64,000 nt of DNA from Adineta vaga (lineage: Eukaryota; Animalia; Rotifera), in contig CP075496.1 of assembly GCA_021613535.1 (NCBI GenBank), positions 1,302,001 through 1,366,000 on the forward strand, given 5' to 3'. The notes under the pieces were generated by a model. It did no database searches. It had not been told where the DNA came from and saw only the letters and a list, made by a program, of their open reading frames with translations. Shown here piece after piece: positions 47,112-52,114 of the stretch; position 1 is the first letter of the stretch; the number at the start of each line of letters is the position of its first letter. A program made the position numbers and the translations under genes.

Positions 47112-48539
47112 CATCAATAATTGATCCACCTGTGACGATATGCATATGTTTGTTATGCTCTTATTTTAATAATATGAGAGAAAAAAAAGAAAACCTATTT
47201 ATTTTTTTTTGTCATTTAAAATATTTTTCTTTTGAAGAAATAAGAAAATTTTATTCGGTATTTAATTTCTTTTTCTTTGTTTGAAGTAGAAGTTATTGAA
47301 TAATGAAATATTTAATCTGTAAGAATTATATTCGCATCAATGGTTATGTTCTTATCATTAGATAACATTCGAAATAGTAAGATGACTATCAACATTAGTT
47401 TTAAAAGATATTCTTTCACCTTTCTAAGAAATTATGGGTTTTCATTTTGTGGGAAATGAATGTTATCTGTAGTTTCCCTTATATAATTATGTGTGATTTG
47501 TTCTTGTTTAGACACAATCCATCCGGAGTAGCTTCTTTCCGTCCATATGAAACAAGTAAGATGAATTTTAGTTGATAATGACGTTTATGAAGTAAAATTC
47601 TAAGAATTGATTTGAATGTGTCGTTGTCAATCCTATTAGAACTAATCCGTTGAATAAGAAAAGTTATGCAATAGAAATCTACAGTTCAATCCTTGAACAC
47701 ATCATTCCATTAATCAACGGAAGACATACTTTTCTTTTCTTTCCTCTTCTCTTATACCTATGTGACATGACTTCAATCTCAAAATCTAAATCATTGAACA
47801 TTTGTATGACTTCTATACATAAATTCACTCAGTTTAAGAAATCAACATTCATCTCATCCCCTTATGATGGAAATTTGCTTTTAAAAGTAATTTCTTTGAT
47901 TATATTTACATTTACTTGAACAGGAAATCGAGACGATTGAATAACAATGCTAAATAATGTGATAAGAATTCATAAACTAAACATTTCTTAGTCGTCTGAT
48001 TCAATGCGATTCCGTGCAAACACAAACAGTAAGTATAATCATATACAGTGTGTCTAATTTAGCAATCCAGAAACACTTTTCTGTGAAAAATTGGAGTTTC
48101 ATTATAGATGTCACTATTCATCGTCTTATTCAAAGTAAAGAAACTTTATCTTCGTTTATCAATGGTTTTATCAATTGATCAATGACAATTTCCTATATTG
48201 AACCCTTCTTCTCAAAATCATAACACTTCACTAAAAGCTTTCCTCGTATTCCTTGTACACAAAGGTATTTATAAGCATGTTTTAGAATTGAATATCTTCA
48301 CAACAGAGTAGTTCAATAGTGACTGACTCATGGGAAATTCGTGTAGAAGAATTAATCTAAACATCTTAGAAGAAAAAGTTGTTATTGTTATTGTTTTTCT
48401 TTGAGTTGTAAGTGATGTTCTTTTTCTTTGACTATTTATATAATTAAAATTTGTTAAGAAAAAGAAATAAACGATGATGTATATTCAATTTTTATCCGAA
48501 TAAGACGAAAAAAAAGGAAAGAGTTTGATCGATTTCATT

Positions 48540-48851
48540 TCATCCTTGTCGAGATATCCATAATGGTTTGCCATAAAAACGATTTCCACGTGTTCGACGT
48601 GATAACCATAATGGACTAAGACGAAATTTTGAATATTGATTTCGTTTATTTACTTGATCTTCATTTTCATCATTGTGATTTCCATTAATTTCAGATGAAT
48701 CAAACATCGATGGATGCTCATTAAGTTCATCAATCACTGAAGCCAATTGTTGATCCTGTTGAGTTCGATAATATTCTCGAGGAATACCATATAAGGTGTG
48801 AATAAGAAGACAAAAGAATACAAAGATAGTTAATGATATACGATTATGCAT
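48540..48851 (-). CDS. Neuropeptide precursor (103 aa)
   Basis: Signal peptide, acidic spacer, then KR-NQYSKFRLSPLWLS-RR-TRGNRFYGKPLWISRQ-G-stop. Duplicated PLW[LI]SR motif and a terminal Gly (amide donor). Confidence 0.8.
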   Translation of the reverse strand: MHNRISLTIFVFFCLLIHTLYGIPREYYRTQQDQQLASVIDELNEHPSMFDSSEINGNHNDENEDQVNKRNQYSKFRLSPLWLSRRTRGNRFYGKPLWISRQG

Positions 48852-49346
48852 TGTAATTTTAGTTAAGAAAACTTTCTATTGTGAAAGGGAATTTATATTC
48901 GGACGCTAGAAGAAAATACCTTAGAGAGAGAAAAACCGTGGGGGTAGAGAGAAAAATACGATATAAACCAATCAAGATTGAGTATATAGACGAAATACTA
49001 CTTCTTCTTTTTTCTTTTTCTTCTTTGGTCTTACGTCAGTCATTTCTTTCACAGACATGAGAACATCCTACACAACACGATTAGAATCATGTCTAATCAT
49101 AATAAGAAATAATCGATATAAAAATGAATGGCCTTGTTCGTCTATATTTTCTTTTTCTAATCAAAATAATTTAAAAGAATAATCATTAAGATCACTTTCT
49201 TTAGAAAGCAATCGTTTTGAATAGAAGAAAAGGAAAACAAAAGAGTTCATCAATCATACCGAAGAAGAAGAAGAAAAAGAAACCCAAATGAAAATTCATC
49301 AATCATGTATCTTTAGATAAAAATGAGTCTATAATTGATTTTCGAA

Positions 49347-52114
49347 ATGCTATTGAATCTTTTTCTTCTGATCCATTTCGTCAATCTTCATTCCATCGTT
49401 TCATCCAATGAATATCTGGCAAATACAAGCAAACATCTTTTCTATTTTCTTCAAGTAAATTCGATCGTTTTTCAAAGTATAAAATCAATTGATTATTTAG
49501 ATAACTGATATTCATATAACTCATTTTGGTCATGAAGATCGAATGAAACAATTTGAAGAGTTTTGTAATCAAATTATCAAAACATTAATTAAACCTGAAG
49601 TAACAATTGTGTCAGGTAGAGAATTCAATTATGTTCTTTGCCTTTTTTCATTAATTCAGTTATTTCTTATTCAGGTGATCTTGTAAATAGTGTAGCAAGT
49701 TTGAAATCTAAACATGATCCATTATTTGGAACAGCACAATATGAAAAGGAATGGATTATTTATCGAAATATATTAGATCGAACGAATGTTACACAATATA
49801 CAAAATGGTTGGATACTAAAGGAAATCATGGTAAAGAAATAAGGATATGAGGAGATTATTAAATTGATGAATTTCAATGAATAGATACGTTTATGGATTC
49901 AAATCCTGATTCAGTAAATAGTTATTTTCGGTAAGAGAAACTGTTTGTGTTTTGTAGAGGAAATATCTTTTGACTTTTATTCAAGTATGTATTCGCATCA
50001 AGGACAAGTTCATAGTGGTTCATATGAATATACATTGAGAACGAAGGATAATGATAGTTACTCATTTATTAGTATTGATTTATGTCCGAAACCGGGTATT
50101 GGACGACCATTTAATTTCTTTGGTTTAATGAGTAATGTAAAAGAAAATATTTTATTTGGTGAAAAAGTTCTGTTTTTTTTTTCTTAAAATTTCAGAAAGA
50201 AATGCAAAATTTGAGAAAATTATCAGAACGAACGAAAAATTCCACAACAGTTATCTTATTCGGTCATTATCCTTTATCTTTTACTTATGCATCTGGACTT
50301 CAACAACTTATGAATCATGCGATCGTTTATCTAAATGGTCATTTACATTCCGGTATTAAACATCTATATACTCGTCATTCAAGTGGATTACTTGAATTCG
50401 AATTAGGTGATTGGAAATCTAATCGACGGTAAAACTAAAATGACCAATGAATCTTTTGTTTATTTCGTTTGAATAGATTTCGTTTGATCACAATCGATTC
50501 CGGACTTTTATCATTTGAAGATTATCGATTTAATCAACCAATCTATGCTATTATATCAAATCCAAAAGCAGCGAAATTTCAAACATCAAGAGAACCATTA
50601 AATCGACTAAGTCAAAGTACACATATTAGGTTTATTCAAATCAAATATGTCTTGGATTTTATCAATAAGAAATCTTTTCTATTTGTTTTAGAATTCTTAT
50701 ATTTGCTTATTTACCGATTAGTGATGTCAAAATATTCATTGATGGACAAGCGAAAGGTTCTGCTGTACAAACAAATGATCATAAGAATTTGTTTGTTTTA
50801 CCATGGAATACAAGTTTATATAATGATGGAAATCTTCATGAAATATCTGTTCAAATTAAAGTAAATTAAAACGAAAGTAAAATTTCATAGTTGATTATTT
50901 TTTGTTTAAAAGGATAATGGCAATAATACTGTGACTATTACTCATGAGTTTTCTTTCTCACTTTCAACGAGAATACCTTGGAATAGATCAAAGTTTTTAC
51001 TTTCGATTCATCTACCAACTTTCGTAAAAGATGATTTCTCTTTTCTTTTCTAAAACTGACTTTATTTTCTTTTAGGGTCTTTGTATTCAGATATTATCTC
51101 TATGTATCTACATACTTATTCTCTTCTTCTTCCGATATCAAGCTAAACATAAATCTAGTAAGTTGAATTTTCAGGTACATATCATAGAATACAAGCATAG
51201 GCGGAGATACAATCAACGATTGTAGAAATACGTAAGATATCGATCAAAATTCGAAGAACATATGCCCACAAACTAATGAGAAGAAAACAGATTCATGCAA
51301 TGTCTGTCATATTTGTTTACACATAAGGATCGATTAGATCTATTTCGATAAAAATAACTTTATATGACAATCTTCAATATTTTTTGCAGGCCATTTTACT
51401 GGACGATGTGTTTTATGGAATCGATTTCGTTTACGAATGACACTTCTTTGTTCTGTTGATTTGATCTTCTATTCCCTCGTCAGTTTTTCAATCTATCATC
51501 TCATCGGTATTGATCTTTGATTATTCCTTTAACATCATGTCTAAATCGATTGTTTTGTAAATTAAGGTCCATGGTATATTGGTTATTTAACAAAAGATGA
51601 TATCGGTAGTGTATTTTTATGGGGAATATTAGTTCAAAAACATTATTTACCAACTGATACACAAATTCAGACAGGATTTGTTCAAGTAAAATCTTTTCTG
51701 AACTCGAAAAACTAGTTTTCTTTGAAATTTTAGTTATGTTTCTTCTTATTTCCATTAACAAATTGTTTAAGTTTTCTTTGTTATTATCGTTACAAACAAC
51801 TTCAATCAAATACAAATCGAATCAAACTTTATTTCAGTCGTTGTTGGAGAATCTTGACTGTTTACATTCTTTTTCTATATACAATAAGTTTTCTTACTTT
51901 CTGGTCATTTGTAATAACAGCATCGTATAAATTTGCCTGGATTTTATCTCCATTTGGTCTGATATTAATTGCTTTAACCATACTTCTTTATATTCAAGTT
52001 CATCGATTAAAATTTGAAGATTTTCATTTGTTAATTTCAAACAATTCCACAGAAATAATCACTTCTCCGAATTCGAAAATTTACGAACAAGAATTCGTTT
52101 TAAAATCTCAGTAG
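49347..52114 (+). CDS. TMEM62: Transmembrane protein 62-like (calcineurin-like metallophosphoesterase + C-terminal TM region), multi-exon
   Basis: Signal peptide; FLQ|ITDIHI, SGDL, WLDTKGNHD, FGHYP, YLNGHLH, LEFELGDWK, STHIRIL; hydrophobic C-terminus. Confidence 0.85.

Follow-up and report, generated by a model that had tools for sequence, protein, structure and literature searches.

A duplicated PLW[LI]SR motif in an apparently bdelloid-restricted precursor of a putative amidated signaling peptide

Amidated protostome prohormones with a single peptide, of the DH31, PDF, and CCHamide type, share a layout of about 100 amino acids, in which a signal peptide is followed by an acidic spacer, a dibasic site, a conserved peptide, and an end consisting of Gly with or without basic residues. 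For rotifers, an AKH-like precursor was the sole one reported before the NP-HMMer preprint, which gives neuropeptide sets for Adineta ricciae, Rotaria socialis, Didymodactylos carnosus, and Brachionus plicatilis (10.1101/2024.07.20.604414). This survey lists amidated peptides for bdelloids, including those of the CAPA type (F-P-R-I-amide) and the leucokinin type, it gives no tachykinin or luqin for A. ricciae or R. socialis, and by its design it could find only families shared with arthropods (10.1101/2024.07.20.604414). Neither its lists for A. ricciae and R. socialis nor any of its 13 supplementary files contains the PLWISR family described here (10.1101/2024.07.20.604414). A full-text literature search found no paper on a PLWISR-type motif, and a search of the Adineta and bdelloid neuropeptide literature returned nothing on such a family.

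The gene described here lies on the minus strand of a 64,000-nucleotide stretch of the Adineta vaga genome (contig 4, 1302001-1366000), which we refer to as the window and whose numbering is used below. The open reading frame starts at its first in-frame ATG, at 48851, and its features are collected in Table 1. With a probability of roughly three in four, judged from the sequence evidence set out below, we consider the product to be the precursor of a bdelloid-restricted secreted, amidated signaling peptide, that is, a neuropeptide or a peptide hormone. The PLWISR precursors are an undescribed family of an ordinary gene kind.

Table 1. Features of the peptide gene and its two neighbors, in window coordinates.
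Feature	Position	Strand	Basis or remark
mRNA, single exon	48387..48988	-	RNA contigs, no joint inside; 5'UTR at least 137 nt
Coding sequence	48540..48851	-	103 codons plus TGA stop at 48540-48542
Predicted signal peptide, residues 1-22	48786..48851	-	hydropathy, modeled helix, and homolog layout
Acidic spacer, residues 23-68	48648..48785	-	11 D/E versus 2 K/R; poorly conserved
Lys69-Arg70 dibasic site	48642..48647	-	K69 and R70 each at least 90% conserved among 31 sequences
Peptide 1, residues 71-84, first F-x-x-x-PLWLS unit, predicted without amide	48600..48641	-	F76 and S79-S84 invariant (31 sequences)
Arg85-Arg86 dibasic site, opening the multibasic linker R-R-T-R-x-N-R (residues 85-91)	48594..48599	-	invariant (31 sequences)
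Peptide 2, residues 87-102, end PLWISR-Gln, predicted C-terminal amide	48546..48593	-	R91-R101 invariant (31 sequences)
Gly103, predicted amide donor, last residue	48543..48545	-	invariant
TMEM62-like neighbor, many short introns, directed away from the peptide gene	49335..52111	+	PF24384 at 50687-50914, plus strand; spliced RNA contigs; tblastn
3'-side neighbor, convergent with the peptide gene, product of ~270-300 aa	45217..47281	+	tblastn, spliced contigs

The initial annotation of this stretch had described a signal peptide, an acidic spacer, KR and RR sites, and a terminal Gly, and hydropathy and composition confirm that all of these are present in the 103-aa reading frame. The N terminus is basic at first and then turns into a hydrophobic core (the Kyte-Doolittle mean over 11 residues peaks at 3.16 within residues 5-20), AlphaFold2 models a helix over residues 2-21, and the alignment places the same layout in all homologs. 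The signal peptide would be cut after Gly22, at a point where the family consensus reads ..HTL-x-A before INP. Directly past this predicted cut, in a spacer that is otherwise free to vary, lies an I-[NP]-P-x-Y motif (residues 23-27, window 48771-48785, minus strand), whose P25 and Y27 each vary in no more than 10% of the 31 sequences; it could act as a sorting or convertase-docking element.

The duplication noted at the outset, two copies of F-x-x-x-P-L-W-[LI]-S-R, is borne out as well. The tail units F-x-x-x-PLWLSR and F-x-x-x-PLWISR are identical at 6 of 10 positions, a score that was reached in 11 of 20,000 shuffles of the 33-residue tail. The same annotation had pointed out that the final Arg is not directly followed by Gly, and in every member listed one more residue precedes the Gly. 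It had also judged the internal G-K-P an improbable cleavage site, and the relatives bear this out: P0032 has A instead of the G and P0038 has Q instead of the K, both with an unaltered PLWISR.

A word-based search returned 31 homologous proteins of 87-130 aa from A. ricciae, A. steineri, the contig 1 copy of A. vaga, R. socialis, Rotaria sp. Silwood2, and D. carnosus, together with proteins from metagenomes and read assemblies. The alignment of these 31 reveals that F76, S79-R88, R91-R101, and G103 are invariant and that K69, R70, N71, and Y73 are nearly so, whereas the spacers vary in length and sequence with many indels and substitutions. The conserved peptides are thus held between conserved basic sites (KR, RR, and R-x-x-R are kept) behind a divergent spacer. 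Among 18 representatives that include the most divergent members, PLWISR, the final Gly, R88, R91, and the P-L of the first unit are invariant. The residue before the Gly varies and can be T, P, Q, H, N, or F. In all sequences listed, the protein ends solely in G, GR, or GRR, so that the C-terminal Gly is either the last residue or precedes basic residues alone. Interchangeable endings of this kind are what an amidation signal predicts, and we see no other reason for them.

The exceptions to this pattern point to the core product. In P0037 (Rotaria magnacalcarata / R. socialis), KR reads K-H and the first unit has decayed; in P0038, where the first unit has decayed too, KR reads K-G and RR reads R-Q; P0039 has lost RR and most of the first unit and ends in S-R-F before the Gly. 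All three retain PLWISR-x-G(R). In the divergent copies the second unit thus outlasts KR or RR and the first unit, which makes the amidated C-terminal peptide the probable core product, and we take the PLWLS peptide 1 as an accessory product that most lineages have retained. The linker R-R-T-R-x-N-R carries a one-residue deletion in Didymodactylos-type sequences; such tolerance fits a linker that contains putative cleavage sites (RR, and R-x-x-R ahead of the second Phe). The check that the initial annotation had proposed, conservation of the motif and the basic sites in relatives, therefore came out in its favor: PLWISR is kept throughout, and KR and RR are kept save in the divergent copies.

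To examine conservation at the DNA level as well, coding sequences of nine gene copies, representing five species, were compared by the Nei-Gojobori method over the 26 most conserved codons. Over these codons dS ranges from 0.1 to 1.4, and nonsynonymous changes are found at three variable codons only. The accumulation of synonymous changes next to confined nonsynonymous ones indicates that the constraint acts on the peptide and not on the DNA. For the peptide codons themselves (48546-48620, minus strand, compared with L002 and L004-L011), dS is 0.24 between the A. vaga copies and 0.1-0.5 between genera save Didymodactylos. This modest dS and the recurring CCA TTA TGG do not tell codon bias apart from an extra constraint at the RNA level. 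An open frame on the plus strand (48458-48616), antisense to the peptide region, has tblastn matches in other loci; it reflects the conservation of the peptide codons on the other strand and is no second gene.

Transcription was assessed with contigs from four public runs of whole-animal RNA, each from a different study. Four contigs cover the peptide gene (X19, 48387-48988; X1, 48398-48805; X5, 48450-48849; X7, 48473-48801), and none has an internal joint. In two of them, T runs that the genome does not encode precede 48450 and 48473 and represent the A tails of minus-strand RNA. Polyadenylation at 48473 and 48450 gives 3'UTRs of 67 and 90 nt, respectively, and the longer contigs extend to 48387. 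In the same runs the genes flanking on both sides yield contigs that are spliced at GT..AG joints of 46-62 nt, and the runs are therefore RNA. The peptide gene, a single exon among intron-rich neighbors, makes an unspliced, polyadenylated mRNA from the minus strand, and the call for transcript evidence was answered by polyadenylated RNA in four runs from four studies. The contig word depth of the peptide gene is ~10 times that of its neighbors, word depth being a poor measure. At window position 48672, the third base of codon 60 (Asn), the assembly has A and all four RNA runs have G; this is a strain or allele difference with no coding change. A chance reading frame was rejected on the strength of the transcripts and the conservation.

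The A. vaga assembly (100.8 Mb, six contigs) contains two copies of the peptide gene. The second is located on contig 1 at G000:C1:10574180-10574494 on the plus strand (L002:1477-1791) and encodes a 104-aa protein, P0026 (NCBI locus tag I4U23_003392), which NCBI names a hypothetical protein of Adineta vaga. P0026 is 49% identical to the window protein over residues 9-103, with hardly any difference in the peptide region; its end reads PLWISR-P-G-R, and its spacer contains an extra KR. A third genome match, L003, proved spurious (E 0.197, internal stops). One further protein, P0040 (97 aa), nearly matches the A. ricciae copy P0002 over its first 58 residues, and its tail is in another frame with the peptide region lost, so that it represents a broken allele or else a frameshift introduced in sequencing or assembly.

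The relatives total ~40 (31 plus 8). All that carry a name or an informative context come from bdelloid rotifers (Adineta, Rotaria, and Didymodactylos), and the rest are metagenome or read-assembly proteins. An exhaustive profile search of 1.84 billion representative proteins gave 14 matches at E ≤ 0.001, all from the PLWISR-precursor family, and no match in this collection could be traced outside the bdelloids. It should be noted that, at this library size, matches below ~40 bits miss the E ≤ 0.001 threshold and a short, much-diverged peptide is invisible. "Bdelloid-only" is thus used here to mean that searches of protein collections detect no relative outside the bdelloids. Within them, the family is found in every genus sampled and in both ancient duplicates. 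The initial impression of an unfamiliar, lineage-specific family agrees with these results: the relatives are confined to bdelloids or metagenome sequences, no Pfam family applies, and the motif is absent from the literature searched.

The gene context is conserved along with the peptide. The peptide gene stands head-to-head with a TMEM62-like gene (Metallophos, Ig_TMM62, and TMEM62_C domains) in both copies of A. ricciae, in A. steineri, in R. socialis, in both copies of Rotaria sp., in Didymodactylos, and on a 2-Mb metagenome contig. In most of these loci it is also tail-to-tail with a gene for a protein of ~270-300 aa, and the order in the window is identical. By exon-wise tblastn, the TMEM62-like gene of the window matches the one beside the peptide gene in eight other loci, and the gene at 45217-47281 matches L002, L004, L005, L008-L010, and L012. 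The contig 1 copy has the same gene order, which identifies it as an ancient duplicate of the gene in the window; as the order is common to both ancient duplicates, it predates the bdelloid genome duplication. The contig of the divergent P0039 has the neighbors of the second A. ricciae copy (EML and a TMEM218-like gene), so P0039 also derives from a bdelloid-type genome.

These observations bear on how the gene arose. It is intron-free among intron-rich neighbors and has no detectable relative outside the bdelloids, which has led us to a tentative scenario that we regard as possible although rather unlikely. The interval that separates the TMEM62-like gene from its neighbor would have gained the new gene in the bdelloid stem, either de novo or through retroposition, after which the PLW[LI]SR unit was duplicated in tandem and then frozen by selection. 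If true, it would provide a dated and traceable birth of a peptide signaling system.

Structure prediction and feature-based searches were in accord with a prohormone. The AlphaFold2 model from the 31-sequence alignment has a pTM of 0.28 and contains only two helices, at residues 2-21 (the signal, pLDDT ~90) and 25-45 (in the spacer); residues 46-103 are coil with a pLDDT of 50-59. A globular secreted protein was ruled out by this model and by the absence of cysteines. The protein-language-model neighbors of the whole protein, at 0.89-0.93, are mostly neuropeptide precursors of like size (DH31, NPFF, PDH, gastrin/CCK, FARP, and urotensin 2B). The match is below the recognition threshold (2030 versus 2300, and 160 shared features versus 170), and we read it as "looks like a prohormone" and not as kinship. 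The same search with the C-terminal 40 residues alone gave no match above chance. For the processing enzymes, the A. vaga genome encodes a copper monooxygenase domain of the PHM type (PF01082, best 143 bits) and a convertase P domain (PF01483, 68 bits), both being matches at the level of domains only.

Taken together, the conserved peptide with its processing signals, the divergent spacer, the transcripts, the lack of a globular fold, and the language-model neighbors support the original proposal of a neuropeptide-type precursor. The other amidated peptides reported for bdelloids set a precedent, and the processing-enzyme domains in the genome point the same way. Our current model of its maturation is as follows. 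The signal peptide would take the protein into the secretory pathway, where subtilisin-type prohormone convertases would cut past KR70 and within residues 85-91 (at RR86 and possibly at R88 or R91). A carboxypeptidase would remove the basic residues, and peptidylglycine alpha-amidating monooxygenase would convert the terminal Gly to an amide. The C-terminal peptide predicted as the core product has 11-16 residues and ends in PLWISR-x-NH2, with x being Gln in the window copy; peptide 2 would be shortened to residues 92-102 if R91 is also cut. In most species, peptide 1 with its related PLWLS motif would be released as well, without an amide. As target of the ligand, a G-protein-coupled receptor that recognizes both the PLWISR core and the amide is most likely. 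Cleavage, amidation, cell type, and receptor are all inferred from sequence and from what is established on prohormone processing. Several points count against a signaling role. It is unusual for a ligand that the only variable position should be the residue predicted to carry the amide; a contig depth of ~10 times that of the neighbors, poor measure as it is, would be more than expected from expression in a few neurons; the language-model score stays under the recognition threshold; and a cationic mature part rich in Trp, Phe, and Pro behind an anionic propiece is the design of many host-defense peptides too.

The last point leads to a distinctly less probable explanation, in which the protein is a cationic host-defense (antimicrobial) precursor. 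An anionic propiece would mask a Trp/Arg/Pro-rich amidated peptide, which convertases would free to target microbial membranes. The charge design is indeed that of the Trp/Arg/Pro-rich antimicrobial precursors (indolicidin, tritrpticin, and the cathelicidin-type and frog skin precursors), which likewise consist of a signal peptide, an anionic propiece, a dibasic site, and a cationic, aromatic-rich amidated peptide. In the window protein the acidic propiece (11 D/E) and KR are followed by a stretch, residues 71-102, with 8 K/R, no D/E, and 6 aromatic residues in 32, and by the predicted C-terminal amide. No cysteines occur in this mature part and no fold was modeled; the contig depth above that of the neighbors, a weak measure, would agree as well. 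However, antimicrobial precursors such as those of frog skin peptides conserve the prepro part while the mature peptide changes fast, and the bdelloid family has the reverse pattern: the mature part is invariant across genera and in both duplicates while the propiece drifts. In place of an expanded, diversifying gene cluster, there are two copies per genome. A conserved prepro part with a diversifying mature peptide in an expanded family is thus not what we find, and of this comparison only the charge design holds.

About equally improbable, in our view, is that the precursor belongs, as a strongly diverged member, to a bilaterian family already known, namely tachykinin/natalisin, PRXamide (e.g., pyrokinin/CAPA/neuromedin U), or luqin/RYamide, with a receptor orthologous to that of the family. 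Motif resemblances and apparent gaps in the bdelloid repertoire speak for this: P-L-W-x-x-R, as the initial annotation noted, may resemble the natalisin core P-F-W-x-x-R, the succession of aromatic, x, Ser, Arg, x, and amide is loosely like F-x-P-R-x-amide, P0039 is predicted to end in S-R-F-amide, and the tachykinin and luqin slots look empty in bdelloids, judging by the A. ricciae and R. socialis survey lists. On the other side, Pfam searches with the window protein and the 31 homologs at E up to 10 returned no neuropeptide family, and what they did return was noise from the hydrophobic and acidic parts; no neuropeptide profile falls on any of the 31 members. Each of the three candidate families also departs from the bdelloid precursor in its own way.

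For the natalisins and tachykinin-related peptides (F-x-x-x-R-amide and F-x-G-x-R-amide), the likeness consists of an aromatic residue four places ahead of an Arg near the amidated end and of a Pro-aromatic-Trp-x-x-Arg that looks like the natalisin core. In the bdelloid precursor, in contrast, an extra variable residue separates the Arg from the amide, Arg is never the amidated residue, and there are two units of which one is amidated, where natalisin and tachykinin precursors have many amidated copies. The C-terminal F-x-G-x-R-amide of tachykinins (a family with F-x-G-L-M-amide endings as well), usually present in several copies, is absent; the protein has an internal F-Y-G-K followed by Pro, in which G and K are replaceable. 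Natalisin is known from arthropods only. The alternative that had been raised initially, a very divergent natalisin/tachykinin relative, thus found no support, given the extra residue between Arg and Gly and the lack of a tachykinin profile match.

The PRXamide peptides (pyrokinin, CAPA, ETH, neuromedin U, and sCAP) share with the bdelloid ending an aromatic-x-[small]-Arg-X-amide in which the last residue varies, and the P-R-N-amide of neuromedin U is similar to the S-R-N-amide end of two bdelloid members. The invariant residue ahead of the Arg is Ser, though, and never the Pro of a C-terminal Pro-Arg-X-amide; no NMU profile matches, and bdelloids already have a separate precursor with the canonical CAPA-type F-P-R-I-amide. 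In luqin/RYamide precursors, the peptide lies right past the signal peptide, ends in R-F/Y/W-amide, and is accompanied by two C-terminal cysteines, whereas the PLWISR peptide is at the extreme C terminus with no Cys-containing part beyond it and an R-F-amide end is seen in P0039 alone.

Most improbable of all is a role outside signaling, in which a small protein or peptide is secreted, for instance as part of an adhesive or glandular product or as an inhibitor, and its basic sites go unused. Secretion is indeed the only well-supported step. Yet without processing and amidation there is no easy explanation for the interchangeable G, GR, and GRR endings or for the conserved dibasic sites that bracket the conserved segments, and there is neither a fold nor a cysteine in a protein whose spacer is free to vary.

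If the precursor does encode an amidated signaling peptide, it adds a strongly constrained and apparently bdelloid-only ligand family to the neuropeptides of rotifers, and it provides a concrete synthetic peptide, ..PLWISR-x-NH2, for receptor deorphanization and for behavioral and physiological tests in bdelloids. Its use lies in annotation and in the study of lineage-specific peptide signaling; the general concept is unchanged.

By its construction, the precursor is closest to the DH31, PDF, and CCHamide-type prohormones. It has their size and their order of parts, its conservation, like theirs, is limited to the peptide, and they are the nearest by language-model features. For DH31 the similarity is 0.93, with 160 shared features against a guide value of 170. 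The DH31/calcitonin-type hallmarks (a peptide of ~31 aa with a conserved core and a Pro-amide, and the DH2-like Pfam family) are not found in it: there is no Pfam match, and a Pro-amide is predicted in some PLWISR copies only. There is also no sequence similarity to any of these prohormones, and the bdelloid family differs from them in two features of its own, a PLW[LI]SR unit that is duplicated and a predicted amidated residue that is variable.
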